A DNA stretch of 20,485 nt from Octopus sinensis (GCF_006345805.1 NW_021823975.1:1-20485); one strand, 5' to 3'; numbered from the stretch's first letter, positions 1,568 through 20,485 are shown. Notes: generated by a model not told the origin, from the sequence alone. Made by a program: numbers and translations.

Positions 1568-1919
1568 TAAGTTTAATTTCTCCACCTTTTCTGCCATTTT
1601 CAGCATATTTCTGCTTTCCTCTTTGAAGAATTGCCTCTTTCTGAATTCTCTCTTAATTTCTTAGCTTCCTTTGATCTTTGTTTATCTCTCAGCCTTCATC
1701 TCTAACTAAATCAATCCTTCTGTGCATAACTTTTCACCTGCCATTTTATTCCTTAAATCTGGGTTTCTTTTCCATTGTCTCAATTTCTTTCCATGCAATA
1801 ACACAACTTTTCTATTCGACGTTCACAGCTAAAGGATAAAGACTTAAAGATTTATATTTATACACATCATGACAATTCATTTTACTAACCTGGAATTTTA
1901 CCATTTATTGATTTTGCAG

Positions 1920-1968
1920 ACTAGAACGTCAAGAAATCGCTGAGGTATCTGGTCAGAAACCCAAACAA
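1920..1968 (+). CDS. Predicted 49-nt coding micro-exon A of an unidentified host gene (x-LERQEIAEVSGQKPKQ; phase 2 in, phase 0 out)
   Basis: TACTAAC branch point 1883-1889, ttttgcAG acceptor (1918-1919), GTAAGC donor at 1969. Only one of three frames is open. Flanks are conserved in a paralogous copy at 20.2-20.5 kb. Confidence 0.7.
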
Positions 1969-2432
1969 GTAAGCTTTTGTTTTTTAATCTTAAAATATTC
2001 TTGAATAGTTCTGAATTGGGATGAATGATTTCTTGAGAATTTCATCAAAGGATTTGCTTAAAATGAACGCTGTATATTCTGTTTATGAATAATTTCATAA
2101 ATTTTCTCACATTGATACGACTGGTTGCTATCTTTTATACTGGTAGACCAAGCTATTATTCTTCAGACTGGTAGAGCTATCTGCAATTTTTGAAGAAGGT
2201 AGAACTCTATTTTATCTCTTTTTGGTAGATCCAGCTACTAAATTCTATATATTTATTTCAGGCTTCCATTTTGTTATATTATTACAGCCAGTGTGGTGGT
2301 TTTCATTTTAATATCACGGGGGACAATTTTTAATATTAGAAAAAAACAGCTTCTATATATCATATTATTAGAGATGAAAAGAATCATCGTATTATATGTC
2401 AAACCAGTAGAACCAGTTTCTAAATTCCCCAT

Positions 2433-2434
<2 letters not shown>

Positions 2435-2469
<35 letters not shown>

Positions 2470-2533
2470 TGTATGTATGTATGTATGTATGTATGTATGT
2501 ATGTATGTATGTATGTATATGTGTATGTATATG

Positions 2534-2609
<76 letters not shown>

Positions 2610-2632
2610 ATATATATTATATATATATATAT
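2435..2632. repeat. Compound microsatellite (TATG)n(TATC)n(TA)n
   Basis: Directly visible; forms the left flank of the LINE. Confidence 0.98.
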
Positions 2633-2635
2633 TAA

Positions 2636-3931
2636 GATGACACCCAGCATGGATTTCGACCAGGTAGAGGCTGCCTAACACAGCTCCTGCAACACTATGA
2701 CTGGGTGTTGAAACAGCTACTAAATGGCTCAAATGTGGATGTAATATATCTTGACTTTGCAAAAGCCTTTGATAAAGTCGACCATGGTATGATCTGTCAC
2801 AAACTGCGTGGTCTCGGCATAGGCGGGAAACTTGGAGAGTGGCTGCACAACTTCCTAAAAGACAGAAAACAGGCAGTTGTGAGCAATGGAGCCACCTCCA
2901 GGGAAACGCAAATAACAAGCGGTGTCCCACAGGGCACTGTCTTGGGGCCACTGATGTTCATAGTGGCCCTTTCAGACATGCCTTCAGTTGCTACGATGAC
3001 CACCCTTGCTAGCTATGCAGATGACACAAAGGTCTCCCACGCAATACAAAACCCTGAAAATATTGCGCATCTGCAACATGAGCTGGACACAATATACAGG
3101 TGGGCTGAGGACAACAACATGCAGTTTAATGCAGGTAAGTTCCAGGCCCTGCGCTACTGGCACACAAAGGTAAATGACGTGAAGACTGGATACACTGGCC
3201 CAGGAAGAATTGCAATCCCTGAGTCAAAATCAGTGCGTGACCTGGGCATTGACATGAGCAATGATGCATCTTTCCAAATGCATATTGCTACTCTGGTGAT
3301 AAAATGCAGACGGCTAGCTGGATGGATTCTCCGAACTTTCAGAACAAGAGAGAAGGAGACACTGATGGTCCTATGGAAAACATTTGTCCTCAGCCGCTTG
3401 GACTACTGCTCCCAACTTTGGTCACCACACAATATAAAACAAACAGCAGAACTCGAAGCAACTCAGAGAAGCTACACAAAGAAAATCGTCTCAATGCAAA
3501 ATGTCAGCTACTGGGAAAGACTGAAGGTATTAAACCTCTTCTCCCTGGAGCGGAGGCGGGAGAGATATGCAGTAATATACATCTGGAAAATCCTGGAGGG
3601 TCTTATCCCAAACTTTGGCATTCAAAGTTACTCCAACCGCAGAACGGGGCGCCGCTGCGTGGTGCCAAGGATTCCAACATCACCATCAAAATACAGGTCC
3701 AGATACTGCAACAGCTTGGGTTTCAGAGGACCACAGCTTTTCAACATCCTCCCTAAATGCCTGAGAGACTTACATGGTGTGGATGTGGGTTTCTTTAAAA
3801 CTAAACTGGATCTCTTCTTGTTGGGAGTCCCAGATGAACCTACCTCACGACAGGAGACACGGATGCGGGCAGCAGCATCGAACTCCCTTGTTGATCAAGT
3901 GCCACGTATCAGAGGTGGATTCACAAACTAG
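2636..3931 (+). CDS. C-terminal part of LINE ORF2 (reverse transcriptase and C-terminal domain); no start, 5' truncated
   Basis: Uninterrupted frame extending upstream of the listed GTG to 2636 (DDTQHGFRPGRGCLTQLL). Motifs YLDFAKAFDKVDH, GVPQGTVLGP, YADDTK, LDYCSQLWSP, LERRRER. Confidence 0.9.
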   Translation, partial: DDTQHGFRPGRGCLTQLLQHYDWVLKQLLNGSNVDVIYLDFAKAFDKVDHGMICHKLRGLGIGGKLGEWLHNFLKDRKQAVVSNGATSRETQITSGVPQGTVLGPLMFIVALSDMPSVATMTTLASYADDTKVSHAIQNPENIAHLQHELDTIYRWAEDNNMQFNAGKFQALRYWHTKVNDVKTGYTGPGRIAIPESKSVRDLGIDMSNDASFQMHIATLVIKCRRLAGWILRTFRTREKETLMVLWKTFVLSRLDYCSQLWSPHNIKQTAELEATQRSYTKKIVSMQNVSYWERLKVLNLFSLERRRERYAVIYIWKILEGLIPNFGIQSYSNRRTGRRCVVPRIPTSPSKYRSRYCNSLGFRGPQLFNILPKCLRDLHGVDVGFFKTKLDLFLLGVPDEPTSRQETRMRAAASNSLVDQVPRIRGGFTN

Positions 3932-4005
3932 TGTGGCTCATTCAGCGGTGGTGCCCCAGCATGGCCGCGGCCTTCGGGCTAAAACATTTTTAAGGATTTA
4001 AGGAT
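2636..4005 (+). mobile_element. 5'-truncated CR1-group (CR1/L2-like) LINE with 3' UTR and tttaagga tail repeats
   Basis: RT-coding frame followed by a short 3' UTR with a gcc-TTCG-ggc hairpin (3970-3979) and the tail tttttaaggatttaaggat. (TA)n lies on both sides. Confidence 0.9.
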
Positions 4006-4024
4006 ATATATATATGTATGTATG

Positions 4025-4068
<44 letters not shown>
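4006..4068. repeat. (TA)n/(TATG)n microsatellite
   Basis: Directly visible. Confidence 0.97.
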
Positions 4069-4072
<4 letters not shown>

Positions 4073-4275
4073 ATCCAAACATGAAAACACAAACATAAAA
4101 TACAACAACGCGAGGACGTGGAACATGTAGAGTATTATTGGACGCCCAAGAAAGAAGGAAAGAAGAAGGGTTTAACGTTTCGAGCGGAGCACTTCGTCAG
4201 AACCATACGAAAAGGAAAGATCCAAAGAAGGGAAGACGGAGGAAAAAGAATCTCCAACGGTGCATACACGGTCAT
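4069..4275 (-). mobile_element. Penelope-like element terminal (pLTR-type) fragment
   Basis: Contains ctgacgaagtgctccgctcgaaacgtta on the minus strand, a PLE-type minimal hammerhead; homologous to 1-105. Confidence 0.6.
4169..4204 (-). ncRNA. Minimal type I hammerhead ribozyme motif
   Basis: Minus strand: GGUU-CUGACGA-A-GUG cuccg CUC-GAAA-CGU-UA^AACC. Stem I GGUU/AACC; stem II has one mismatch; stem III is 1 bp within the palindrome AACGUU. Confidence 0.6.
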
Positions 4276-4359
4276 ATATATATATATGTAACATATGGTA
4301 TAATAAACAGGGCAAATTTTAGGCATTTCTCCACAGATTGAAAAAAAAGATAATGAACA

Positions 4360-4402
4360 ACCTTAATTGATTTTCAACCCTTGTTGCGTTCTCATCAGAG
4401 AC
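4360..4402 (-). ncRNA. Degenerate second minimal hammerhead motif
   Basis: Minus strand: GUCU-CUGAUGA-G-AACGC AACAA GGGUU-GAAA-AUCAAU-UA^AGGU. Stem II AAC/GUU; stem I GUCU/AGGU includes wobble pairs. Confidence 0.45.
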
Positions 4403-4547
4403 ATCCACATCATTCTGACAGTGTCCAGAAAACAAGCAGCCAAACTGTTTCTATACTCAACAAATGCTGCAGTTACTCTATGTAAGGGTCTCTAATTTGC
4501 ATACCGAAAGTATTTGACATTATAAGTACCAGTGGCCAGTCAAAGGG

Positions 4548-4573
4548 TATGTATGTATGTATGTGTATATATA

Positions 4574-4660
<87 letters not shown>

Positions 4661-4680
4661 TGTGTGCGCGTGTGTGTGTT
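4548..4680. repeat. Compound microsatellite (TATG)n(TA)n(TG)n(AG)n
   Basis: Directly visible. Confidence 0.97.
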
Positions 4681-4689
4681 TCACCGATC

Positions 4690-4800
4690 ACAGGACTTTC
4701 GGCTTCATGGAAGAGACTGAATGTTGATCTCAGAATCTTGGACAACATGGAGGAGATTACATGGGATCAAGATGACTGGCGATATGCACAACTGGATGCT
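4690..4800 (+). mobile_element. Probable RTE-clade LINE C-terminal remnant
   Basis: Translation SWKRLNVDLRILDNMEEITWDQDDWRYA resembles the RTE C-terminal pattern (W...DL..L......DR..WR); recognised from memory. Confidence 0.4.
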
Positions 4801-5430
4801 TCACTCAGTTTCCCTCCTTTTCAAGACACTCACCACCACCCATCGCCTACCTAACACCAGTTCTTCCATGCCACTGTTTTTCTACCCAGAATCATTTCAC
4901 AATTTATCCACCCTTCATCCTTCATTACTGTTCTCTCCACCCATACTTTCAATCCTCGCCCCTTCCCCAACCCTTCCGTACCTCCAATTTATCTCCCCTC
5001 ACCCACCACCACTCACTTTTCTCATACACTGTGCATTCCTATTTCTCTCCCCCATCCACTCCTCCAACCTACCCAACAACGTGTCACCTCTCTCACTCTT
5101 CCTTCTCCTTTTTACAATATCACCATTTCTTTTCTGTGGTTCTGCATTAAAAGATATTCCCTACTCCCCACTCATCCTACCCACTTCGTACTGTCAATGT
5201 TCACCCTGACGCCTCATCACACCTATCTTTTTTTTTAACTCTCTTGCTCCATCTGATCACCTCCATCCTCTCTTCTAAAATACGAAAGGTCATCTTACTC
5301 CTTTATAACAGCAAACTCCTGCTGCTCCGACCCTTTTCTCTCATACTTTACTCCTTTCTACTCCTTCTCCTCGCTTAAACTTGCTCCACCTTGGTGTTTA
5401 TAATCTTGTAAGAAACATGGTAACCCCACT

Positions 5431-5981
5431 TATGCTGATGGAATGAAAATTACACCCAGATTATGTTGAAATGTGGCATTATGGTGTATTAAACATGCCA
5501 AAGCACACAGGAGCACGATTCCAGCCCGGAACAGGATGACTTTGACGATAATGTTGATGCTCATAATGGGGAGAAGGGGGATACAGTATACCACTGTATC
5601 GACCAGATTATTATTATGCTGATGGAATGAAAATTACACCCAGATTATGTTGAAATGTGGTATTATGGTGTATTAAACATGCCAAAGCACACAGGAGCAC
5701 GATTCCAGCCCGGAACAGGATGACTTTGACGATAATGTTGATGCTCATAATGGGGAGAAGGGGGATACAGTATACCACTGTATCGACCAGATTATTATTA
5801 TGCTGATGGAATGAAAATTACACCCAGATTATGTTGAAATGTGGTATTATGGTGTATTAAACATGCCAAAGCACACAGGAGCACGATTCCAGCCCGGAAC
5901 AGGATGACTTTCACGATAATGTTGATGCTCATAATGGGGAGAAGGGGGATACAGTATACCACTGTATCGACCAGATTATTA
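5431..5981 (+). repeat. Three head-to-tail copies of a 184-bp unit
   Basis: The unit start tatgctgatggaatg occurs at 5431, 5615 and 5799; I saw only 2 internal substitutions between copies. Confidence 0.97.
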
Positions 5982-6539
5982 AATGCTGCTATACTTCGCT
6001 ACGGACTGGTCACAGTGAGCTCTTTCTTGATTGCATGATTCTTGTCCATTTTGACCCCAATTTTTGAACTAAATAATGTTCTCATAGTCATGGAGGCCTT
6101 CTGTGTGGCCCTGTCCAGTCTGTCGGATATCACTCAGCAGCTGTGTTGGATTGGTGCATCGCCAACAAGGGACGATGGTCAAATGTGTTGCTATGATTTA
6201 GGAGAAATAAACAAGCAACAAAAATATCACTGAGAGAGAAAGAGAGAGAGAGAGAGAAATACAATTATCACTATAAGTGGGCGCGGGGGAGAAAGAGAAA
6301 TGTTATAATATCGGAATTTCAACTTTTCGTAAAAAGAGGACTGTTTTTGCAGGGAAAAAACATAAAAAGGAATTAGTTCAACTTACATGAAGACAATTTA
6401 CCGGGTGTTCTATCGGTATAAACGTCTTCAGCAGCATGTTTCCGTATATATATATATATATTATATATATATATATAAACGAATGAGTGGACAAACAAAA
6501 GGAGGGCCCTCAATCAATTTATTGAGAGTTACATATATC

Positions 6540-6689
6540 AATCAGAACAGTTTGATTCAAATTCGTTGGTACTTTTGAGTTTCAAACGCGATGCTGGTCG
6601 TCAGCCATTTTGAATTTGAGTTCAAATTCAAAATGGATAACGACTTGCATCGCGCTTAAATCTCAACGAATTTGAATCAAACTGTTTTG

Positions 6690-6692
<3 letters not shown>
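6540..6692. repeat. About 150-bp imperfect palindrome (foldback/MITE-like)
   Basis: Perfect 15-bp arms ccattttgaatttga (6605-6619) and tcaaattcaaaatgg (6622-6636). Pairing continues outward through cgcgatgc/gcatcgcg and aacagtttgattcaaattcgttg/caacgaatttgaatcaaactgtt. Confidence 0.9.
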
Positions 6693-6759
<67 letters not shown>

Positions 6760-6775
6760 ACACACACACACATAC
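6693..6775. repeat. (CT)n(CA)n microsatellite
   Basis: Directly visible. Confidence 0.97.
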
Positions 6776-7384
6776 ATATTGTTCGGGATTATGGGTTTGT
6801 TTTGGGGTTTGTGTATGTATGTGTACGTGTCTATATGCATATATACACGTGTATATTTCCTTAGGTGGATAGATAAATCATTTGTTTGACCGCACATTAC
6901 AGGTTGACGCTCCACCTACCAACCTCCCCAATGACACATCTCAAGCCACGTCTGGTTCCTAGTGGTTTAGTATCCCTAAAATATGATTCACTTAATTACT
7001 CCTTATCTATAACCCTACTGCGCCTTTGTGATCCGATGTGACTCTTGTCTTGTTCCTCGCCTCTTCTCTAATTTCGTCAGAGAATTCTACTGACATCCTT
7101 TTCTATCGGTCTTTTGATGACTCTAACTCCTTCCTTATACCAATGCTTTCCTTCTTGTCATTATTTATAATACTAAGTCACTGTGGGTGCCCACCCCATC
7201 TCACTCTCCAAACTCACATTAGTTCACATACATTTCCTGGAAATTTAAATACGCTGCTAGCTTGTGGTTTCTTGCTGTTTCAACTTTCTGTCTCTTAGGT
7301 CGATCACATTTACCGTATTTAAGAATCAATACAGAAATTGTTTTACGCATCAAGAATATGTAGAATACTGATTTAAAAACTTTC

Positions 7385-8075
7385 TGCAGTCCTATGCAAA
7401 ATCAATGGGCACTACAAGCTGAGAAAGAATGGACCTCGTCTCACCTCTTATGGCTGATTTAAAACTTTTCGCAAACAGCAGAGTCTGAAAAGGAAAGGCT
7501 GGTATTGAGGCTGTGCAAATGTGCAACATGGCTATAGGGACGGAAGTAGGTATCTCGAAGTTTTCGGTGCTTACTTTGAAGCGGGAGAAAAGAGTAAAAT
7601 GTAGGGGCAAAGAATTGCCAAACGGGGAGAGAATGCGCATTACTGTTTCTTCGCGGACTCTCGTTTATACATCAACAATTATTATAAATACGAAAGAAAC
7701 GTCAACACATTCCATGGGCGGTGTTCTGCGGAAAAGTAAACGCTGTAAAGAATGACCCATAGCAAAACCAGCCAATAGAAAGTTACTTGAAGCAATCAGT
7801 TGTTGAAAAATAATGGTGATGACGATGGTGAAAAGGAAAGTCTGAAAAGGAAAGGCTGGTATTGAGGCTGTGCAAATGTGCAACATGGATATAGGGACGG
7901 AAGTAGGTATCTCGAAGTTTTCGGTGCTTATTTTGAAGCGTGGGAAAGAGTAAATTGTATGAGTATAGGAGGGCCAAACTGAGAGAGAATGGAAGACCCG
8001 GATGCTGATGGGTACAAGTAATTTGGGATCCTGGAGCTGGACAATATATTGCACAAAAAAATGAAGAACAAGGTC
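7385..8075 (+). mobile_element. Decayed R4/Dong-like non-LTR RT fragment (domains about 5-7) with an internal direct duplication of about 125 bp
   Basis: SHLL-MADLKLF (LFMDDLKL-like), IGTEVGISKFSVLTLKR..ELPNGERM, then MEDPDADGYK*LGILELDNI (YKYLG-like). The segment at 7482-7605 is repeated at 7839-7962. Confidence 0.8.
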
Positions 8076-8079
8076 GTCG

Positions 8080-9940
8080 CTGCATATTTGATGAAAATAA
8101 GAGAAATAATCTGTCAATCCTTAATGAAAGTAATAGACAATCAACACTACTAATTAACAAGAAAACAAGAAAAATACTCAATAAATACAAAATTGCAGAA
8201 CAAGGTAGGCCTGAGTTAAAAGAACAGCTGAAGCAAAATATCCTTACCAAAGCACAAAGAATCCGCCAGTATGAGAAACGCCAACATTTCTTGGAACAAA
8301 AGAAAAAGTTCAACTCTAACCCCAAAAGATTCTACCAAGAACTTGGCAAAAATAACTTAGAGATCAATGCAGCAGCACCAGCAGAAATGGAAGAATTTAG
8401 GAAAGAAATATGGTCGTCGATGGAACTACCTCAGAAAATGTCTTTTAAAATAACAAAAACAGCACCTGAACAACTCTGGCCCCTATAACAACTGAAGAGG
8501 TCACCCAGGCACTGAAAAACCTAAACAACTGGAAGGCACCTGGGCACAAGATCCTTAAGTCCTGGTTAAAATACCTGCCAAGAAAACATAAAAGGCTGGC
8601 TGAGAAATTTAATGAAATACTAGCAAAGCCAGAGACAATGACTGAATGGCTCACGGAAGGGAAAACTATCCTAATTCCCAAGTCCTCTGAAACGGTAAAC
8701 CCACAAAATTACAAACAGAATACTTGTCTCTCTGCATCTTACAAAGTCTTTACTTCAATAATATCACAGCGAATGGGTAAGCGTATCGAAGAAAATAGCT
8801 TTTGTTTCCAGAAGAGCAGAAGGGATGTTGCAAGGGCTGTAAAGATCAGCTACTTATCACTAAAGCCATAACTGAAAACAGTCGCAGAAAGAAGAAGGGT
8901 CTAATTATGGCCAGGGTAAGAAACAACAAACGAAAACGAAAGAGAAGATAAGAAAAGAATGCTATAGACGAGTTAGAGTAATACTGAAAAAGAGCTCAAT
9001 GCAAAAAACAAGATAATAGGTATCAACACTCGCCGTCACAGTTACCGTGACAATATTCTTAACTGGACGCTAAATGAACTAATCAAAATAGACTGGAAAA
9101 GAAGAAAAATAGTGACAGAATTTAGGATGCACCACCCAAAATCTGACATTAAAATGTTTTGTATACAACGTATGGAAGGTGGTAGATGCCTTATACAGTT
9201 AGAAAACCTTTACAAAATAACCACCTAGGACTACAGAAATACCTACTTCAGACGCAAGGAAAACTATTACAAATAGCCACAAAAACGATCAAAACCGAAA
9301 AGAGTCGTAGTATCTAACAGGTATGAGGAAAAAGAAGAAAAAACAAACGATATAAAATAACTGAAATCCAAACTAAAACTGGAACAGCAACGGATCATGA
9401 TAAAACGATGGCAAGAAAAGCCTATTATGGCAAATATTGGGTTAAACTAAACGCAAAATAGACAAAGCAAAATCCCAACAATGGCTGAGAAGCTCAGGAC
9501 TCAGAGTAGAGACTAAAGGATTGTTATTTTCAACACAAGACCAAATCTTCCTCAATACACACAGATAGAGAAATTAAGGCTATCAGGTCGGGTATAGTTG
9601 CTAGAGATCATCAATAAAAAAATGCTTTCTACTTGATATATCAATACCAACAGATGACAAAGTTTCTCTAAAATAAATAGAGAAACTATCAAAATGCAAG
9701 AATCTGGCAGTAGAGGTAACACGAATGTGGAATCTAAAAACAGAAACAAATAATTTGTATCACACTAGGTATGATAAAAAGTATTCAGAAAAATGCATAA
9801 GAAAAATACTAGGACTTACAAGTAAATATAAACATAGAAAATAGCACAAATATGAAAATAAGAGGACCACAACAAACCGCAGCACATACCCAAGGTGCTC
9901 AGAGCTATGCTCGGTAGTGCAGTGACAACATGAGATAAAA
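8080..9940 (+). mobile_element. Decayed, internally deleted R4/Dong-like RLE retrotransposon
   Basis: Broken frames give AQRIRQYEKRQ..NSNPKRFYQELG, NNWKAPG, EWLTEGKTILIPK, CLSASYKVFT, YRRVRVILK.ELNAKNKI, MHHPKSDI, WQEKP, WLRSSGL and an RLE-like region, followed by a 3' UTR-like segment. Confidence 0.85.
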
Positions 9941-9944
9941 ATAA

Positions 9945-10396
9945 GAGGTTGAGCAGGGACTCCGCCTGTGCTTGTTTTCAATGTGTCATTACTGAGAGCA
10001 TGAGGCCTTCGGGCCATTTGACATTGGCGAAGTTGAAATCACGCATAAGAAATATGCTCACGTGGTGTTCCAGTTGCATGAGGATTTCATTAATTCTTGT
10101 GAGGCAATCTTCACACTTGCCTGTGTGGTTTGGAGCCTCAGGTGGGCAATATGTATTGCATATGACTATTGTGTTGCTTTATGCATACAATTAGAGTGGC
10201 ACATACTGAATTTGAGTATGACAGTAAGACCTTGGGTTTGAGGTCATTACGGATGTATACAGCAACTCTATGGTTCCTTTCCCTTCTGTCTGTTCGCAAT
10301 ATAATATATTTTGGTACGTGTACTTCTGCATCCTCTATTTCAGGGCTGAGGTGAATTTCCACGAGTGCTATGCTTAGGGCTTGATTGCATGCAGCA

Positions 10397-10400
<4 letters not shown>
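9945..10400 (-). mobile_element. Decayed CR1-like ORF2 AP-endonuclease fragment
   Basis: Minus-strand translations EIHLSPEIEDAEVHVPKYIILRTDR..VAVYIR, IYCPP and FLMRDFNFANVKWP (ETHL, DR..GGV, YRPP and GDFN motifs of APE domains). Confidence 0.75.
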
Positions 10401-10479
<79 letters not shown>

Positions 10480-10495
10480 TACATATATATATACA
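10400..10495. repeat. (CT)n/(TA)n microsatellite
   Basis: Directly visible. Confidence 0.95.
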
Positions 10496-10632
10496 CTTTT
10501 AAATCGAATTTATAACTATGTATTCCGTGTAAAACAAAGTTGATTGCCGAATTTGAGATATTTTTAAATTCCTATCATTTGTCTTGGGTTCGACCCGAAT
10601 ACTTCTTAAGCAGTTCTATATATTTTGTAAGA

Positions 10633-10710
<78 letters not shown>
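10633..10710. repeat. (AAT)26 microsatellite
   Basis: Directly visible; produces the poly-N run in ORF 10540..11247. Confidence 0.98.
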
Positions 10711-10712
<2 letters not shown>

Positions 10713-11445
10713 GGACCACCTAATCTCTGGATGTAAAGTCTTAGCACCAGTGGAGTATAAATTAAGACATGACAGAGTTGGCCAATATCTCCACTGGCTA
10801 ATAAGTCGGCATTACAATATCAAAACTGCCGACAAGTGGTATAATCACCACCCTGAGGCTGTAACTGAAGGAGAAAATGTAACCATTCTGTGGGACTTTC
10901 CAGTACATACAGACCGAACCATCAAGGCCAATAAACCAGATATTGTTGTGAAAGACCAAAACAATAAAGTTTGCTTATTGATCGACATGAGCATCCCCTG
11001 TGATCATAATATCTCAGCGAAAGAGTTTGACAAGCTCAGAAAATATAAAGACCTACTCATTGAAATTGAGAAAATGTGGCATCTCAAGGCGGTTACAATA
11101 CCAGTGATCGTAGGAGCACTAGGAATGATCAAGAAGGGAACCGAAAATTATATGAGAATGATCCCTGGCTTACCATCCCTGCAAGAAGTGCAAAAGATTG
11201 TCTTAACTGGTACATCACACGTATTGAGAAGAGCATTGTCGATGTGAGAACTGTTGCTGCTCATGTATTTTAATTTAACTTAAAAAAAAAATTTTTTTTA
11301 ATAAAAATGAATGAACTACTGAGTTTGGTTTAATGGCCTACCAATATACACTATGAGTTTCTTTGCCCTAGGAGTCGGGAAGACACTCGGCAAGAAATGG
11401 AAGAAAATTTGAAAGAAGAAAAAAAAAAGTAATAATAATAATAAT
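10711..11445 (+). mobile_element. 5'-truncated R4/Dong-like element: intact zinc-knuckle 3' half and RLE endonuclease frame, 3' UTR and (AAT)5 tail
   Basis: DHLISGC..RHD (3' half of CCHC knuckle), KPD..IDMSIP..KEFDKLRKY (PD-(D/E)xK RLE), IVGALG..LRRALSM*, stop at 11247. (AAT)n lies on both sides. Confidence 0.92.
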
Positions 11446-11596
11446 GTATATATGTATGTATATATATATATATATGTATGTATATATGTATGTATATATA
11501 TATATATATGTATGTATATATATATATATATATATATGTAATGTATATATATATATGTATGTATATATATATATGTATATATATGTATGTATGTAT

Positions 11597-11636
<40 letters not shown>

Positions 11637-11638
11637 AT

Positions 11639-11672
<34 letters not shown>

Positions 11673-11673
11673 G

Positions 11674-11734
<61 letters not shown>

Positions 11735-11817
11735 GTATGTATGTATATATATATGTATGAATATATATGTATATATATATATATATATAGTATATATATT
11801 ATATGTATATATATATG

Positions 11818-11864
<47 letters not shown>

Positions 11865-11968
11865 GTATATATATATATGTATGTATATATAATATATGTA
11901 TGTATATATATATATGTATGTATATATATATGTATGTATATATATATGTATGTATATATGTATGTATG

Positions 11969-12056
<88 letters not shown>

Positions 12057-12424
12057 AATGTATGTATATATATATGTATGTATATATATATGTATGTATA
12101 TATATATGTATGTATATATGTATATATATATATGTATGTATATATATAAATGTATGTATATATATATATGTATATATATATATATGTATGTATATATATA
12201 TATGTATATATATATATGTATATATATATATGTATATATATATATGTATGTATATATATATGTATATATATATGTATGTATATATATATGTATATATATA
12301 TATGTATATATATATATATGTATGTATATATATATGTATGTATATATGTGTATGTATGTATATGTATGTATATATATATATGTATGTATATGTATGTATA
12401 TATATATATGTATATATATGTATG

Positions 12425-12455
<31 letters not shown>

Positions 12456-12466
12456 GTGTATGTATG

Positions 12467-12497
<31 letters not shown>

Positions 12498-12554
12498 GTG
12501 TATGTATGTATATATACATATATATATGTATATATGTATATATATATATGTATG

Positions 12555-12587
<33 letters not shown>

Positions 12588-12627
12588 GTATGTATATATA
12601 CATATATGTATATATATGTATATATAT
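11446..12627. repeat. About 1.18-kb (TA)n/(TATG)n cryptic microsatellite
   Basis: Directly visible; the source of six long spurious Y/I/H/T/M/C/V ORFs. Confidence 0.99.
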
Positions 12628-13518
12628 GCTGTACTCCAGTCAGGTTTGCATTGTTGATGCCTATGTTATCTTCTGAGAATATAGATGCTTTTGTCACAAG
12701 AACTAATGCCCTAGTGTAGCGAGGAAGCGTTCATAAGTGAATAGTATTTGTGCAAGACACCTGCAATCATGGGTGAATTGAGAAATATAAGAAGTTAGTT
12801 CTTGTTTAGATTGCACAATCCTTGCAAAAGTTCTACAAATTTCATGTAAAATATTGTATCAAAATATGTCCGTTTTTCAATTGGGAAAATGTACAGCTAA
12901 AATATACACGCTTAAATAAACTTACATTAAATGATATTTATACGTTCATCATAATTTTTAAAAAAACTTTCTATAACTTATAAAACTATTTAATGTCTTT
13001 ACCGTTTTTCTTCTTTGAATTTTAGTCTCTTGGGAGTCTTTTGATGATTTCAGGATGTGAACTTTATAATTCATGTATACATATATAAATTGTGTTTCAT
13101 ATTGCATCTGAGGATACTATTTTCCTAAAGATTTTATTTAATTAGGCCTAAATTAGTAAGATATTAAAAGGATCTGCATTGATATCATAAACACTGGACT
13201 TCATAAAAATAAAATAGTTGTAAATACGATTTCAGATCTTTATTTGAATTCCATTATGCTAACCATATTGACATCTCTAAAACTAAATTGAAAATAAAAC
13301 TGTTTATCTTTTTCTGTCAATGGATTTTTCTGTGTCTATATCCGTGTGTAGTTGTTAGACTTTTAGATGTGGTTATTCTTTGTCTCTTGCTTACTACTGT
13401 TACTTATATACCTCCTCCTTCAAACATATATTTTACTAAAAACTTGTTTTCTATACCTAGAAATACTAACCCAAACGTTTCTTTCAACAATTAACATTGT
13501 TTTTCCTCTTTTCTCTAG

Positions 13519-13577
13519 CCTCAAAAACCAGAAACACTAATCCAAACGTCTTTGACAACGACATTATTTTCGGATAT
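13519..13577 (+). CDS. Predicted 59-nt coding exon X of the same host gene (PQKPETLIQTSLTTTLFSD+at; phase 0 in, phase 2 out)
   Basis: TACTAAC at 13464-13470, strong polypyrimidine tract ttgtttttcctcttttctctAG, GTAAGT donor at 13578. The frame is open and its phases match exon A upstream and exon B downstream. Confidence 0.65.
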
Positions 13578-14869
13578 GTAAGTAGACAGACATTTCCAGA
13601 TAACTTTTCTTCAACATATTGAAAGACCCACTAAACACCTACATCTCTCGATAACTGATTCTTAAAGAAATTAAAATATTGATTTTTATCCTGAGGTATT
13701 TGGACAATTTCAGCAATAATGAAATATTCAGTAAACTGCATCAAAACCAAAATATCACTGGTATTTATATAAAATAAAAGTGATGGAGTGAAGTAGGTTC
13801 AATGTTGAAGGGATGAACGCCTATAGAGGAGGGTTAAAAAGCAATATCTGGCAAGCATTTAATACAGCACCTTAAGTTCAGCAAAAATGACAAGCATAAG
13901 ACAATTAGGGTTTTGATAATTTTGATCAATTTAAATTATTACAAATTAAAAATACTATAACCATCTTGTTATTATATGCACACGTACATCCACACATTAA
14001 CTATATATTAAAGCTTCATCCAAATGAAATTTTGTATTACTTTCTTTCTCTGAAGAATTTCTAATAGGAGAATTCTTACATATTCCTGTTCCCTGTTTAT
14101 CTTGGCGACTCGTATTAGGAAATTAAATATATGTAAATAGTAATAAATTATACAAAATATTTTTCCTGTGTACTGTGTGCCCCACGTTATCTCTCCAAGC
14201 GTTGTGTTTTCCACATGTACCGTTAATATCTTATGCCTAATATTATCAATAAAGTCGAAGTGAAAACCAAATATATAGTAGGAGTGGTTAACTGGAAAAT
14301 ATATGACCAAATGTAACAAGAGTTGTTTCATCAATGTCCAATGTGAAATTTGGCATAATTTCTACAGTTGGCTTCCTTTCCTAATCCTAACCACTTTACA
14401 GAGTGTACTGGGGACCTTTTTGCATGCCACCATCAATACTGAAGCTTCCATGCAGCTGCTAAGAATATGGGTAGGTTTTAAGTTGGGGAATGAAGAGATA
14501 CAGTAAGGAAAAAGTGGGTTGCAGAGAAGGTTCTTCTTTTCGTGTTTTAGCTGTTTATCTTTAGAGGTTTGGGCGAGAATAATGAAGAGCTGAAAAGGTA
14601 TAGATTGTAATGCTCAGGTGTCTAGGTGGCGCTTCAACGTGAATAGAAGTGGGTAGGAACAAGGAAATAGGTGTGTGGATTGGTGGGGTTGTAAAAAGGA
14701 TTTGGTTAGCAAAAGATGGAGAAATGGGAAACGGAAAGGGAGGCAAGGACCAACTGTAAATATTGGATAAAGATGGGGTTGAACAAATGAGCCAAGACCA
14801 AAGAGAAGTGCACTTTCAAAATAAGAAAGAGATCAACAGAATCGGGAACACATGAGTCAAACGCAAAGA

Positions 14870-14924
14870 CAGCTGCACTTCGTGAGGGGATTTGGTAGAC
14901 GGAAACTGAAAGAAACCCGTTATG

Positions 14925-14985
<61 letters not shown>

Positions 14986-15198
14986 ATTTGTGTCTGTATT
15001 TGTGCCCCTCACTACCATCGCTTGACAACCGATGCTGGTATATTTGCGTCCCCGTAACCTAGCTGTTCGGCAGAAGAGTTTGCTAGAATAAGCACCAGGC
15101 TTACAAGAAATAAGTCCAGAAGTCGATTTCTTCGACTAAAGTGCGATATTCCAGCATCGTCACAGTCAAATAACTGAAACAAGTAAAAGAGTAAAAGA
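14870..15198 (+). mobile_element. Octopus-type SINE, 3' portion with internal (TA)/(TG) microsatellite
   Basis: ggatttggtagacggaaactgaaaga..(TA/TG)n..gcttgacaaccgatgctgg..ttcggcagaagag..agaataag..ccagcat..cagtcaaataactgaaacaagtaaaagagtaaaaga; recognised from memory as an abundant octopus SINE. Confidence 0.75.
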
Positions 15199-15350
15199 AT
15201 AGCAGAAGTAGGTTCCGTTCCACTAAACCAAGAAGGTTCTTTGAATATGTGCGATGTATTTTATGGCTAACTAGTAATACTGCTTACGTATGCGTAACTG
15301 AGATATTTGGGTTGGATTATATAGTTATTGCTTTTTTTTCAATTTATTCT

Positions 15351-15580
15351 AAGGCGGTTAGCTGACAGATTCGTTAACAGACTGGACAAAATGCTTAGCG
15401 GTACTTCCCCCCGTCACTACGTTCTGAGTTCAAATTCTGCCATGGTCGACTTTGTCGTTCATCCTTTCGGGGTCGATGCAATAAGTACCAGTTCCGTACA
15501 TGCGTTGATGTAATCGTGTTATCGCGTCTCCCCAAATTTCAAGCCCTGTGCCCAGGGTAGCAAGGGTTATATAATTACTG
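15351..15580 (+). mobile_element. tRNA-derived SINE (octopus-type, CORE-like central domain)
   Basis: aaggcggttagctgacaga head with an A-box-like sequence, B box gagttcaaattc at 15426-15437, and central ttcatcctttcggggtcgat..aataagtacc. Confidence 0.8.
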
Positions 15581-15744
15581 ATTTTACACCACTTTCTATA
15601 TTCTGTAATTGTCACAATACAGAAACATTTCTCATAGCACACGCACACAATTTACAGATGCTTACATTTTTATTTTCCGTGACATTTTAACGAGTCCAGT
15701 TATTTATTATTATTATTATTATTATTATTGATTGATTGATTGAT

Positions 15745-16210
15745 TGATTGAAAGAACCGCGCATGCAATCAAAATGACAGTGGAATGAAATATATGAAGC
15801 CTAGTATAACCATCATGACTACCCTTCTGATAAGGGTACACCTAGCACATGCAACACAGCCACCCAGTTTAAGTAGATCACTCCGCTCAAGAGGTTCCTG
15901 AATAAGGCTTGTTTTAAGGATGATGAACGAAGCATCCATATCTCCAGACGTGAATTATTCAAAACCCGCAAAGAATTCCTCTCAACACATGGCTATGATA
16001 CTCCCTCACTACTTCTGCACAAATCGACAGCCACTAAAGGACATGCTCAACTGATTAAAGTCAAACATCTGACAAGTAAATCTGTGATATTAAGCAGAAT
16101 ATTTGCTGTAGCACATCTTTTATACCAAAACAAATCAATGTAAATGATAGCATTTCCAATCAGTTAAGATCAGAAGACATGAGAGCCAGTGTCTGGTAAT
16201 GCATCAGGGA

Positions 16211-16212
<2 letters not shown>
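15745..16212. mobile_element. Copy 1 (internally deleted) of an unclassified repeat of about 545 bp flanked by (ATT)n
   Basis: Collinear similarity to 16631-17175 (catcatgact, aggttcctgaataagg, aagaattcctctcaacacat, aaatctgtgatatt, catcttttatacc, gcatcaggg). Confidence 0.8.
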
Positions 16213-16272
<60 letters not shown>

Positions 16273-16274
<2 letters not shown>

Positions 16275-16415
16275 TACTTGTAATCTGCATGTTTGTTACA
16301 ATCACTAGCTGAGCCACACCTAGCGTCATAGGGCGAGTGAAGGATAAGAGATGTAACAGTATAACTGAAAGCTGGTGGATGCGAAAAATACTAAATAGAA
16401 ACTTCAATCGATAAG
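16273..16415 (-). mobile_element. Probable extremely 5'-truncated R4/Dong-like copy (last codons plus 3' UTR) ending in (AAT)n
   Basis: The minus strand reads RTLSIEVSI* (compare LRRALSM* at 11247), then a 3' UTR with cccta..ctagg..ctcag, then aataataat. Confidence 0.5.
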
Positions 16416-16482
16416 GTTCTTCTTCTTCTTCTTCTTCTTCTTCTTCTCTTCTTCTTCTTCTTCTTCTTCTTCTCATTATTAA

Positions 16483-16526
<44 letters not shown>

Positions 16527-16572
16527 ATTATTATTGTTGTTGTTGTTGTTGTTGTTGATGATGTTGTTATTA

Positions 16573-16630
<58 letters not shown>
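16416..16630. repeat. Compound (TTC)n(ATT)n(GTT)n(ATT)n trinucleotide array
   Basis: Directly visible; the source of the poly-R/E/N/K/T ORFs. Confidence 0.97.
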
Positions 16631-16631
<1 letters not shown>

Positions 16632-17175
16632 GAGTGAGAGAGCAGTGCATGCTTTCATAGTGAAACCGGGGCAAAATATAGGAAGCTCAGTATACCCATC
16701 ATGACTAACCTTCTAATGAGGTTACACCAAGCACATACATTACACACATATGTGCGCAGCATGGTGACGTCATATCAAGATAAATACCACATAACCATGC
16801 GGGTGGAATTTTCTTCAGGTCGAGTAGCCCACCTCGCTCAAAAGGTTCCTGAATAAGGTGGGGCCCAGTTAGATGAACGAAGTACCCGTGTCTCTAGAGG
16901 TGAATTAATTAAACCCCAAAGAATTCCTCTCAACACATAACTATGATGGTCCCCACTACTGCTACCCGTGATCAGAGATGCAAATATTGTCAGCCATTAA
17001 GAGACATGCTCAATTGGTTATGGTCAAACAACTGACAAGCAAATCTGTGATATTGAGCAGAAAATTTGCTGTTGCCCATCTTTTATACCAAAACCAAATC
17101 AATGTATATGATAACACTTCCAATCAGACAAGATGAGAAGCCACGAGGGACAGTTTCTGGTACGGCATCAGGGCA
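16631..17175. mobile_element. Copy 2 (apparently full length, about 545 bp) of the unclassified (ATT)n-flanked repeat
   Basis: Runs from tgagtgagagagcagtgcatg to ggcatcagggca with (ATT)n on both sides; no coding signature seen. Confidence 0.8.
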
Positions 17176-17192
17176 TTTATTATTATTATAAT

Positions 17193-17435
17193 TGAGTGAG
17201 AGGGCAGTGCACGCCATCAAAGTGACACTGGGGTAAAACATACGATGCCCAGTATACCAATCGTGACTAAGCGCTTGATAAGAGTACACCAGGCACATGC
17301 ATCACAAGCATAAGTGCGCGACATGGTGACGTCATATCAAAATAAACAGCGCATGGCCTTGCAGGTGGGGCCCAGTTAGAATTTTCTTCGGGTCGAGCAG
17401 CGCATCCCACTCCAATGGTCCCGGAATATGGGTCC
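17193..17435. mobile_element. Copy 3 (truncated) of the same repeat, abutting the Gypsy relic
   Basis: tgagtgagagggcagtgcacgccatcaaagtgacactgg.. matches the start of copy 2; similarity stops at tttaaggatg. Confidence 0.8.
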
Positions 17436-20130
17436 TTTAAGGATGTATTTTTGCAGCTAGGGCACAGCCTCTGCATGATTTTACTAGTTCTTCAATGTCA
17501 CGGTCCATTGTTGACCAATATGCGTAACTTTTCATTAATGATTTCATTCCCGAAATCCCTGGGTAACTAATGTGAAATTACTTTAGTAATCGCTTCTGCA
17601 GTGCGGCTCTTTGTGCATACATGAACACATTGTCGTCTTCCGCTTTTACTTTTTATGTCTTGCAATGTAACTGGCAATTCACGTATGACGTTACACAAAA
17701 CAAATCAGATGTTAATGTTTTTTTCTTAATTTCATCGAACACCTGACCATTTCAGATCAATTCCAATTTATATCTTATTTTAGTAGATTGTTTAGTGGAA
17801 TTCTTACCTTGTGCATATTTGGTATATAATTTTGATAATAATTTTCAACTTCCAAAAAAGCTTGTAAGATCGATATGTTTAATGGATGGCGCATATTTTT
17901 AACTGCATCTGCCCTCAATACATCTAGTCGACGTCCATTTGTCGATGATTTGCTCTAGAGATTTTATTTTCGGTAAGAATTCACACTTCTCCTCACTCAA
18001 ATTGAAGCTGTAATCCTTTATTCTTTCGAACACATATTTCACTTGCCCTACATGCTGGTCCTGGGATTCGCTTTTAATGAGTATGTCATCCATGTAGGCT
18101 ATTGCGAAATCCGCAACTGCGAGCATAGTGTCCATGACTCGTTGGAAAATACCTGGTGCTGCCTTTACACCAAAATGAAGTCTGTTAAATTTATATACTC
18201 CTCTCTGTGCATTTATTGTTAATCATTTTTAACATTCCTCCTCAAGTTGTACCTGTAGGTGTGCTTCAGATACGTTCAACTTTGAAAAAAAATTCCGCCA
18301 TTTAACTTGGCGAATATTTTTTCCGGACTTGATAGTGGGTAATTATGTGTCATCAAATACTCGTTTAAACCTGTTAGAAAAATCAGCACATACCTGGATT
18401 TTATTGCTTTTCCTTGACGTAAACTGTTGGTGATGCCCATTCAGCATAAACAATTTTTTCCGTAACCCCAAGCTTTTTACGTCTATCAAATTCTTCATTT
18501 ATTTGTTTCAACGCTGCGAAAGGCGGAGTTCGTTTTGGTTTAGATACCGTTATAGCATTTCCTTGTAGTTGAAACTTCGCGTTTGTTTTTGGTGCACAAA
18601 TCTAATTCATCAGAAAAAAACTTCAGGAAAAATCTTTTAAATTTTATTTTTCATCCGTCCGACGCCTTATTTGTACTGGCAGAAAAGCAATTCATATTTT
18701 TACAGAAACAATTTATGGAGAGATCCCATAAGTTAAATAATTCCATCCAGTCTGTTCGGAATAAATTTTCCGTATTATTCAACACAAAAACTTTGGCTTT
18801 TAAAGTTTTTTCACGAAATGTAATCTCGCCCTTAAAATGTAATTTTTTTCCTGAAGCATCATGGTGCAATTTTCGACTTTCTTTTAAACTTAGACCCCCG
18901 ATTTTTTTTCCATGTATCTGCGTTAATTATAGAGATATCACTTTCCATATCTGATTGTAGTTTGGTATCAACATCATTCATTTTTATGAATACAAATTTT
19001 CTTATTTGATTACTATTGACAATACAGATTTCCCAGAATTTTTTTCTTTCGAGCTTTTTTTTTCTGTTACTCTCTATAGTGTGAGCTTTTTATGCCCATT
19101 TTTACTACTCTTAAAACGTTTTTTTTTTAAACGGACAGTTATTTTTAAAATGCAGACCACCCCACTCATAACATGGATTCAGTCTTCACATATTTTTCTT
19201 TTTTACTACTCGTTACAGGTCGACACACATGATTATGAGAGCAATCTTTTTCTTCAATTTTACCTGTGTTATATCTTAAATTCATAACCCTTTGGCATGC
19301 TTCTGCCACTACCTGGAGAATTAATTTTTGGTCCTGTTCTACTTTCGTTAATATCTGGGAACGTATATCTGCATCTTTGCTTGCAGTTAGTCTTTGAACA
19401 AAAATTAGACATTTGAACATGTCCAAAGTTAATTCCTTTAATTTGAATTTTTCACAATCTGTTAACAATCCCAGGGAGTATTGAACAGGGAACTTGTTTC
19501 ACTGATAAGTTTCGATAAATAATTGTTTCATCGAAACAAATCTCACTTGGTTTCTTGGGCATAATATAGTTACTATAATTTTCATGTTTGGCAGGCAATA
19601 ACTTTCTTAAAAGTAGTCGTACTTTTTTCTCGTCAGAACAACTTTTACATTCTTCTTTGAAACTTTCTACGTATCTTCAAAAACATGCAGAGAACGTAGT
19701 TCCTTTTTTCTTGATTAAAACTGAACTCTCCAATGGCGTTTGCTACACTGTCTGGCGAGTATAAACCTGAAGTATTTTCAGACTGCTTCCATATTAACTC
19801 CAGCAAATGCTGGTTTTGTTGTTGTTGTTATAATCGCTATTGCAGCTGTTGTTGCTGGTGCAACTACACCACCCAGGTCAATAAGTCCTCCATGTTAACG
19901 ATTTTTTTCTCTGGTTCCATACCGAAACATTTTAACCCAAGCTTCGAATATCTCGTCACCACTTTTAAATCCTGGTGCTGGATAAAACAATTTAACGAAT
20001 TTGGGTAGAGGGGAGAAAGTATTTACGCGATACACTACTGTTACTGCTGCATGAGGCTAATTCCCCTCTATAAACTGCTCACAGTCAATTGCTGCTGTCA
20101 ACTCGACAGTTGTTGATTTTAAAGAAATGT
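17436..20130 (-). mobile_element. Decayed Ty3/Gypsy LTR retrotransposon (K02A2.6-like gag-PR-RT-IN) with large deletions
   Basis: Minus strand: gag FKCLIFVQRLTASKDADIRSQILTK; eroded protease KLQSDMESDISIIN (DTG site at about 18943-18951); RT FGVKAAPGIFQRVMD..AYMDDILI (YMDD at 18085-18096); integrase zinc-binding HISYPG..YWSTMDRDIEELVKSCRGC (17462-17574). The LTR boundary near 20130 is uncertain, and no 3' LTR was seen. Confidence 0.88.
19952..19961 (-). promoter_or_regulatory. Putative primer-binding site of the Gypsy element (TGGTGACGAG)
   Basis: TGG-starting motif about 60 nt upstream of the gag ATG (19893); resembles the TGGCGACGAG PBS I recall for this lineage. Confidence 0.55.
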
Positions 20131-20290
20131 GTCAGTGCACTTTTAGTCACTTGAGGTGGTCAGAATCCTTCCATATCACTTATATTCCCCATTCTCAGTT
20201 AAAAGATAAAGAGTGAATCATTCGATTCTAGACTCATCATGACAAATTCACTTTACTAATCTGGAATTTTCTCATTTATTCAATTTGCAG

Positions 20291-20336
20291 ATTCTCAAAC
20301 AAACCTACCGTAGAAGGTTTTACCAACAAAAGTAAA
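20291..20336 (+). CDS. Predicted 46-nt coding micro-exon B, paralog of exon A (x-FSNKPTVEGFTNKSK; phase 2 in, phase 0 out)
   Basis: TACTAAT branch point 20254-20260, tttgcAG acceptor (20289-20290), GTAAGT donor at 20337. Only the frame equivalent to exon A is open. Length differs from A by exactly one codon. Confidence 0.7.
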
Positions 20337-20485
20337 GTAAGTCTTTTTAAATTTTAAAATACTTTTCTTTTGTTCTATTTGCCTGAATTGTGATGAATGG
20401 TTTGTTGAAATTTTCGTCAATGGATATGTATAAAAAGAATACTGTATATCCTTTTTGTGAATATTTTTATATATTTTCTCACATT

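Follow-up and report, generated by a model that had tools for sequence, protein, structure and literature searches.

Tandem duplication of exons within genes has reportedly been described before, and in the exon arrays of titin PEVK and nebulin short exons and their introns have been duplicated together. The locus described here bears a resemblance to those arrays, with differences that set it apart. It lies in a window of 20,485 nucleotides (nt), the whole stretch of DNA that was analyzed, which is an entire unplaced 20.5-kb contig (C446; NW_021823975.1) of the Octopus sinensis assembly, and it harbors two micro-exons, A and B, belonging to a family that we term M1 and situated at the 5′ end of genes of the TRPM/TRPS channel type. 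As in titin and nebulin, a short exon with its flanking intron has been copied in tandem within one coding region, with the phase kept and the protein growing by modules, and the product appears to be of low complexity, extensible or disordered. Unlike titin and nebulin, the octopus unit is an asymmetric pair of micro-exons (one of length 1 mod 3, the other 2 mod 3) rather than one symmetric exon, its introns span 2–75 kb, and coding similarity has been lost where the flanks remain 56–84% identical. Tandem exon duplication is of a known kind, and the variant seen here has a unit of two phase-complementary micro-exons in which the intron is the conserved part. We consider it probable, short of firmly so, that A and B descend from one M1 micro-exon that was duplicated in tandem with a partner exon, M2, in a TRPM/TRPS-type cluster, its splicing signals being kept while its coding letters drifted.

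The A/B pair had been singled out by an earlier inspection of the DNA alone (hereafter the sequence-only reading), and its coordinates and flank counts were reproduced. The upstream block (1865–1919 vs. 20235–20290) is identical in 49 of 56 columns with one gap, and the downstream block (2011–2113 vs. 20383–20485) at 84 of 103 gap-free positions (82% in a repeat scan). The same scan exposed an additional upstream block (1810–1875 vs. 20180–20245) with 73% identity, and local alignment, the repeat scan and BLASTN (E=6.6e-35) place the homology between 1810–2113 and 20180–20485 far beyond chance. The two exons, in agreement with the dissimilarity already claimed for them, align no better than random sequence. 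Copy B is truncated by the contig end, where the A/B match stops and the homology does not, given that in other M1 copies it reaches some 350 nt beyond the exon on the upstream side and some 450 nt on the downstream side. Positions 11417–20485 are 98% identical to C17:13045001–13054115, the 5′ end of LOC115221041, and the whole window is colinear at 92–97% with a second locus (C17:13736–13767 kb), where exon A is preceded, at a distance of 7.5 kb, by a first exon (MQIGRGGGRRPVAMASSAN). The window is thus a 92–98% copy of the 5′ end of LOC115221041-like genes. The features of the window are collected in table 1.

As the sequence-only reading had proposed, the flanks were used to look for further copies. 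Searching the 2.72-Gb O. sinensis genome with positions 1800–2130 returned 27 matches, mostly on scaffold C17 between 12.79 and 13.83 Mb, the rest being on small contigs or at 8.8 and 26.2 Mb. Once the copies were oriented and aligned and their exons extracted, at least 27 M1 modules fell into eight exon classes (A–H), which bears out the earlier view of a duplicated coding micro-exon of constant phase encoding a repeated peptide module. Copy A is 66–73% identical to classes B–H and 92–95% identical to six other class-A copies (BLASTN). The exon lengths by class are 49, 46, 37, 43, 28, 28, 52 and 76 nt, all 1 mod 3. Exons A and B are each open in frame 2 alone, and this is also the sole frame open across all eight classes. 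By hand arithmetic, chance would produce such lengths with a probability of (1/3)^7, and 117 stop-free codons at the given base composition with one of about 2e-4. Because this combination of length class and open frame is improbable by chance, M1 copies can be taken as coding exons with a conserved phase (2 to 0). The coding reading therefore withstood the check for stops and frameshifts, all eight classes retaining both the open frame and the length class.

A comparison of about 190 kb of C17 and of the small contig C9010 with the window and with itself revealed the M2 module, located 0.5–5 kb downstream of M1 copies and laid out as TTTCTTTTATTTYCAG, exon, GTAATGCAAGAAATATG. In a search of the genome, at least 23 copies were detected in the same cluster. 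The M2 exons that were read measure 32, 35, 38 or 41 nt, every length being 2 mod 3 and every exon open in frame 1, and they encode two peptide types, one conserved (xxKKW[IM]QENIKL) and one acidic (e.g., KDEMDCSDEE and EDDVDTSEEA). Between A and B, nhmmer detected no M2 homolog in the window, and the role of M2 is taken there by a third micro-exon, X, which restores the frame: A, X and B joined together read ...GQKPKQ PQKPETLIQTSLTTTLFSDI FSNKPTVEGFTNKSK in frame. Exon X is either unrelated to M2 or very diverged from it. M2 and X together range from 32 to 59 nt, have lengths of 2 mod 3 and take the frame from phase 0 to phase 2. In both O. sinensis and O. vulgaris, M1 modules take turns with M2 modules on the DNA, and this alternation of 1 mod 3 and 2 mod 3 exons means that whole codons are added with each M1–M2 pair.

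Three other identities were considered for the M1 copies and set aside. Both the second exon of a small secreted-peptide gene (with signal, pro-region and mature parts) and a set of mutually exclusive exons were dropped, since M2 exons of complementary phase lie between the copies and annotated proteins join them. A dispersed transposable element, the artifact against which the sequence-only reading had warned, was rejected on copy number and location after the scoring of all 26 and 23 initial candidates, as nearly all copies sit within 1 Mb of one scaffold and on small contigs. The M1 and M2 copies are also colinear with annotated exons, and the module alignments have no shared boundaries of the transposable-element kind, although no specific search for terminal repeats or target-site duplications was made.

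The identity of the gene was approached by an exhaustive HMMER search, followed by protein names and Pfam. A virtual spliced peptide retrieved one protein, CAI9735608.1 of O. vulgaris (E=1.4e-21), which joins M2-D-M2-C-M2-F-M2 as predicted, whose exons map to the O. vulgaris locus L059, and whose N-terminal part matched TRPM channels alone in PDB, weakly. In O. sinensis, XP_036366207.1 (LOC115221041; 1272 residues) carries three LSDAT_euk domains (PF18139, "SLOG in TRPM"; E=3.6e-180) and contains X, B and M2 in series (...PQKPETLIQTSLTTTLFSDI / FSNKPTVEGFTNKSK / KSDKKWIEENIKL / RNSKDEEPSKPCDAFG..., then SLOG). Exon X matches its residues 58–77 with 95% identity (tblastn), and the 15 coded residues of exon B are its residues 78–92, followed by KSDKKWIEENIKL and a TRPM SLOG domain. 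On C17 the model covers about 250 kb, from X at 13047092 to position 13287859, beginning downstream of A and terminating within the micro-exon array. As the window stops at exon B, the SLOG exons are off the contig, and the link to SLOG is made through XP_036366207.1 and the 98% match of 11417–20485 to its region. Exon A is used in two O. vulgaris gene models: CAI9735658.1 holds it twice (LELQEMAEVSGQKPKQ / PETTETLIQ...; tblastn matches at residues 21–36 and 85–101), and CAI9735606.1 joins it directly to an M2 exon (match at residues 88–106). In Octopus bimaculoides, the TRPM2-like isoforms X1–X4 (XP_052830018-21) include the entire array D–H, then SLOG, the TRPM2 domain and the first transmembrane segments, and Ion_trans is present in the paralog XP_014774531.2. 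The description of the locus as an unannotated gene consequently had to be given up.

These genes span 404 kb in the O. bimaculoides ortholog and 192 kb at the O. vulgaris A/B locus. The names given by NCBI are TRPM2-like or TRPM-like 2, and a 2026 phylogeny reassigned the octopus "TRPM-like 2" proteins to TRPS (PMC13143021, following PMC7306681). The features shared with TRPM/TRPS proteins comprise the KKWIEENIKLR exon, the PxDAFG motif and the LSDAT_euk SLOG domain downstream of the micro-exons. The O. bimaculoides relatives continue into a TRPM2-like domain and Ion_trans, and the gene that holds A and B may likewise end in a pore. The KKWIEENIKLR exon is presumably the octopus form of the vertebrate TRPM motif WIExxFxKREC, and PCDAFG that of PTDAFG. 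The gene models of the three Octopus species disagree on which micro-exons are included and on the number of SLOG units per gene. The O. bimaculoides isoform X1 differs from X2 (P0013 vs. P0003) by 13 extra residues at 99–111 (SEKTESLDFNPIY), placed between the first M2 exon and exon D; they correspond to 39 nt, a size that fits either a symmetric exon or an additional M1+M2 pair. In isoform X4 an alternative first exon stands directly before exon G, and in three gene models (P0002, P0006 and P0007) two to four SLOG matches follow in series, linked by micro-exon segments. In the searchable literature, no account of TRPM or TRPS was found to describe paired micro-exons arrayed at the N-terminus or a single gene model with several SLOG units in tandem.

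The micro-exon peptides had no significant match in Pfam or PDB, and a charge-hydropathy comparison grouped them with disordered sequences and the SLOG control with folded ones, so they probably form a charged, low-complexity, disordered N-terminal tail or linker. We take the N-terminus of TRPM-type proteins to be cytosolic. This placement does not sustain the likeness to conotoxin genes, Schistosoma micro-exon genes or immune loci that had been suggested from the DNA, since what the array encodes is a cytosolic N-terminal region of SLOG channel genes, without a signal peptide and made of asymmetric paired exons. The Schistosoma genes share with the octopus array their many very short serial exons, fast coding change and gene models that vary in exon use. 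Their exons, in contrast, are symmetric and singly skippable and their products are secreted with a signal peptide, whereas the octopus M1 exons are all 1 mod 3 and the M2 and X exons all 2 mod 3, pair-use is required, the product is the cytosolic N-terminus of an ion-channel-type protein, and the N-termini of the models (MQIGRGGGRRPVAMASSANG..., MPSTQEHDSSPEQDD...) are polar and non-hydrophobic. In conotoxin genes exons likewise diverge faster than introns, but the octopus models have neither the signal, pro-region and mature layout nor a cysteine framework, and their fast exons are internal and repeated. With Dscam-type clusters the locus shares same-phase arrays of homologous alternative exons; it differs in that the M1 exons are used consecutively, the annotated proteins holding D, C, F, G and H serially with M2 between them. 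Docking/selector complementarity or covariation of the Dscam type was not found by RNAalifold in the downstream flanks of the eight classes.

The divergence of exons and flanks was compared for the 28 pairings of the eight M1 classes under strict gap costs, each gap scoring as a mismatch, lenient gap costs having proved uninformative in the identity scan (shuffled controls reached up to 72%). Exon identity was 37%, against 34% in the shuffled control. For the flanks, with a shuffled control of 47.5%, identity rises toward the acceptor from 56–62% at −250 to −101, through 70% at −100 to −51, to 84% at −50 to −1. On the downstream side it is 70% at +1 to +50, 77% at +51 to +100 and 82% at +101 to +150, and it drops to 59–66% at +151 to +300. 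The M1 exons therefore retain no residual similarity between classes, and two intron blocks stand above a decaying background. The claim that the exons have diverged more than their introns is upheld at this depth, and it is likewise upheld among the recent paralogs considered below.

The conserved blocks coincide with recognizable splicing signals. The branch-point motif TTTACTAAT/C occurs in seven of the eight M1 classes, class G having TTTACCAAT, and a pyrimidine tract and a GTAAGT-type donor are found in all eight. The acceptor is (T)TGCAG in five classes, with TTGCAG in A, B, C, E and F, and neither classes D, G and H nor the M2 exons have TTGCAG. Exons this short cannot carry exonic enhancers and depend on strong sites and intronic elements, and the constraint on the flanks fits this general dependence of micro-exons on intronic signals. 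The flanks would thus be conserved for splicing, and the block at +51 to +150 may act as a splicing enhancer. This block is conserved as sequence and not as a fold: across the downstream flanks of the eight classes RNAalifold gave −4.6 kcal/mol with 0 compensatory pairs, and the minimum-free-energy folds of the single sequences differ among classes. Searching it against Rfam returned nothing at gathering level, the sub-threshold matches being microsatellite-driven (mir-297, mir-1277) or weak. Base pairing between an upstream box (CATCATGACAAATTCA) and a downstream one (TGAATTGTGATGAATG) was considered and rejected, as the changes are non-compensatory, the folds differ and RNAalifold detected no covariation. 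The regulation of neural microexons by SRRM4 and its eMIC domain has reportedly been described, and the octopus exons resemble them in being very short, in their conserved flanks and strong splice sites, and in the UGC placed just before the acceptor (TTGCAG in five of eight M1 classes). They differ in that the classical ones are highly conserved, mostly symmetric and no longer than 27–51 nt, whereas in octopus the exon sequence is the least conserved part.

Under the explanation that we favor, one ancestral M1 micro-exon would have undergone repeated tandem duplication together with its partner M2, within the 5′ part of the coding sequence of clustered SLOG-domain channel genes at 12.8–13.8 Mb on C17. 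M1 (28–76 nt, phase 2 to 0) alternates with M2 or X (phase 0 to 2), the pairs lengthening the protein by whole codons, and after the encoded tail or linker come the conserved KKWIEENIKLR exon and then SLOG (MHR1/2). Of this account, the homology, the family, its phases, the presence of the exons in annotated proteins and the contrast in rates are demonstrated. Purifying selection would act on the frame (length class, no stops) and on the splice apparatus, of which the perfect branch point, polypyrimidine tract, (T)TGCAG acceptor, GTAAGT donor and the block of about 100 nt at +51 to +150 would be kept, and the coding letters would change at the neutral rate or faster, with all similarity eventually lost.

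Several observations weigh against this explanation as it stands. Among recent within-class paralogs, 27 of 231 exon sites are variable (11.7%) against 139 of 3466 flank sites (4.0%; Fisher p=2.6e-6). In these paralogs near, middle and far flanks diverge alike (about 2–3% in classes B and C), which makes the flanks usable as a neutral yardstick, and the exon excess is confined to a few copies: class B at C17:13537549 (7–8/46), class C on C9010 (6/37) and class D (2/43). Between O. sinensis and O. vulgaris one orthologous exon, M2-postC (32 nt), has 10 changes in 32 positions against 5.2% in its flanks, and together with the excess in the B and C copies this makes pure neutral drift insufficient. 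Conversely, O. bimaculoides and O. sinensis share well-conserved G and H exons and KKWxQENIKL-type M2 exons, which indicates that part of the array is constrained. For exon A, use in the protein comes from O. vulgaris gene models and is to that extent putative. Octopus may make multi-SLOG proteins, or the predictors may have fused tandem SLOG-only genes by reading through from one to the next. The window copy itself, in which the annotated start codon is out of frame wherever it recurs, may represent a haplotig or a duplicate undergoing decay.

The excess in exons is the point at which diversifying selection has to be considered. Such selection had been put forward in a strong form by the sequence-only reading. 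On this account the peptides encoded by the micro-exons would serve the channel as a surface for recognition or regulation, with new amino-acid variants favored after each duplication. Exon divergence about three times that of neutral-behaving flanks speaks for it, as do the repeated tolerance of in-frame length changes, the outlying M2-postC exon and clustered, charge-changing substitutions such as those of the class C tandem copy. In that copy (C9010:1838–2124 vs. C17:13272673–13272960) 6 of 37 nt differ against 2.6% in the flanks, and of the changes between DLLDEYFEQLKR and DLLDKIFKKLKR five of six are nonsynonymous by a single-step count, three of them switching E or Q and K; C9010 holds two exon C copies, 4.1 kb apart. 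For M2-postC (C17:13278250–13278285 vs. L059:47308–47343) the peptides are KDDKDSSEED and KHGIGSSDEQ, a sharply localized burst given that the surrounding 600 nt differ by only 5%. Over all comparisons, however, nonsynonymous and synonymous changes number 42 and 8, which equals the neutral expectation of 82% nonsynonymous (p=0.46), so that the ratio of their rates (dN/dS) is about 1; several of the "synonymous" steps lie within multi-nucleotide codon changes, and the counts are small. Class A, with seven copies, shows no excess (exon 6.6% vs. flanks 5.4–8.5%), ten of eleven orthologous exons show none between the species (8/405 changes vs. about 2.2% in flanks), and some fast copies (e.g., L010) also have flank deletions and may be decaying. 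The proposed test of dN/dS against intron divergence thus gave a divided answer, an excess of exon over flank change with no excess in dN/dS, and the comparison with O. vulgaris did so as well, M2-postC standing apart from the ten quiet exons. Strong diversifying selection is not borne out; in its milder form it is possible and unproven, a tentative alternative that we would hold open to a limited degree. Positive selection, multi-nucleotide mutation and micro-conversion could each account for the bursts, and the neutral ratio of changes and the small counts allow no choice among them. We infer that the exon excess comes from low constraint with occasional bursts rather than from pervasive diversifying selection. 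A more elaborate version, which we regard as rather unlikely, would make the array a pair-wise skippable cassette, that is, a fast-evolving, alternatively spliced N-terminal tail of a sensory TRPM/TRPS-type channel, with variants positively selected after duplication and inclusion governed through the downstream element of about 100 nt and the UGCAG acceptors. If this were true, the channel, possibly with tandem SLOG ligand-binding modules, would be an octopod-specific ion-channel analogue of micro-exon gene diversification.

Some copies, exon A of the window foremost, might instead be redundant pseudo-exons that gene predictors have strung together, left by an old and decaying duplication. 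There is no M2 after A in the window, the RefSeq model starts downstream of A, the class-A copies are scattered (8.8, 12.8, 13.6 and 13.7 Mb) with eight nonsynonymous substitutions to one synonymous, the annotated start recurs out of frame in the window, and regions R1 and R3 of O. sinensis converge on a single O. vulgaris locus when mapped, suggesting assembly duplication. Set against this, all six fully read class-A exons and all eight M1 classes keep the frame, length class, AG/GT and branch point, a retention improbable for dead sequence by the chance estimates given above; A, X and B join in frame, two independent O. vulgaris models use A, and change faster than neutral is impossible for pseudo-exons. 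We therefore find this account quite unlikely. Gene conversion restricted to the introns, the other mechanism raised by the sequence-only reading, would have homogenized the flanks and left the older divergence in the exons. It agrees with flanks whose similarity exceeds that of the exons at all time depths and would be plausible in a dense tandem cluster, but the converted tract would have to span both flanks and skip the central 28–76 nt in every class. Flank identity, moreover, peaks at −50 to −1 and +51 to +150 and declines smoothly outward, which is the signature of constraint and not of tracts, and flanks 56–84% identical between classes are too diverged for ongoing conversion, making this mechanism very improbable.

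Table 1. Features of the M1 copies, exon X and the start repeat in the window
Feature	Position	Strand	Description
M1 module copy A (intron-exon-intron unit)	1548–2501	+	nhmmer profile of 14 copies, E=8e-229
Branch-point consensus TACTAAC	1883–1889	+	30 nt upstream of exon A acceptor, direct reading
Micro-exon A, M1 type, 49 nt	1920–1968	+	phase 2 to phase 0, peptide (x)LERQEIAEVSGQKPKQ
Exon A splice sites	AG 1918–1919, GT 1969–1970	+	acceptor TTTTGCAG, donor GTAAGC
Conserved downstream intron block	2019–2118	+	...TTGAGAATTTCATCAAAGGATTTGCTTAAAATGAACGCTGTATATTCTGTTTATGAATAATTTCATAAATTTTCTCACATTG, +51 to +150 from exon A donor
184-nt tandem repeat	5430–6031	+	three copies 5430–5981, last extends to about 6031, 99% identity
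Micro-exon X, 59 nt	13519–13577	+	phase 0 to phase 2, peptide PQKPETLIQTSLTTTLFSD(I), acceptor TTCTCTAG, donor GTAAGT
M1 module copy B, truncated at contig end	19850–20485	+	nhmmer E=1.5e-139, 98% identical to C17:13045001–13054115
Branch-point consensus TACTAAT	20254–20260	+	upstream of exon B, aligned with other classes
Micro-exon B, M1 type, 46 nt	20291–20336	+	phase 2 to phase 0, peptide (I)FSNKPTVEGFTNKSK
Exon B splice sites	AG 20289–20290, GT 20337–20338	+	acceptor ATTTGCAG, donor GTAAGT

Between exons A and X, each copy of the 184-nt tandem repeat holds the sequence of the first coding exon that RefSeq assigns to LOC115221041 (MPSTQEHDSSPEQDDF...), and residues 3–56 of XP_036366207.1 match the repeat (tblastn). 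All three copies read ATGCCAAAGC, with the ATG out of frame with the STQEHDSS frame matched by tblastn, and the remainder of the first exon of the RefSeq model also switches frame relative to the window. The repeat copies presumably carry an extra base relative to the chromosome copy, as judged from the protein and not from the chromosomal DNA.

The remainder of the window consists of transposon debris and microsatellite. Transposon remnants at 578–1445 (−), 2636–3931 (+), 17899–18222 (−) and 19452–19676 (−) comprise a Mos1/mariner-type transposase (HTH_48 + Transposase_1), two RVT_1 reverse-transcriptase fragments and one DUF7083 fragment, and the reverse-transcriptase element at 2638–4068 recurs in the cluster in both orientations. 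Positions 11400–12700 form a 1.3-kb microsatellite of the (TA)n/(TATG)n type with 18–21% G+C and a long imperfect palindrome, to which the tracts at 100–260, 2420–2620, 3990–4070 and 4540–4660 are similar. Three diverged tandem copies (76–85% identical) of a (TTA)n-flanked unit of 560–950 nt occupy 15704–17431; the unit is also found between exons D and C on C17 and C9010, and no exon was recognized in it. At the level of the assembly, C17:13255001–13295000 and C17:13815001–13845000, 550 kb apart, both map with 94–98% identity onto the continuous O. vulgaris locus L059 and overlap at exon F, which suggests a split, duplicated or misassembled O. sinensis gene. The small contigs C446, C9010, C9011, C11018 and C2662 are near-copies of pieces of C17, some of the O. 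sinensis "paralogs" may be haplotypes, and the assembly may hold duplicated or misjoined segments.

For the annotation of these genes, the conflict among the models of three Octopus species over micro-exons and SLOG units per gene stands as a warning. Should transcripts confirm the array, it would be a natural example of how exons too short to hold their own splicing information are maintained, with the intron holding the signal and the exon free to change, and the phase-complementary micro-exon pair would be a duplicable unit that extends a protein linker. The tandem SLOG units and variable N-terminal tail would, if confirmed, represent an octopus-lineage elaboration of TRPM/TRPS genes, one not described in the TRP surveys that we found.

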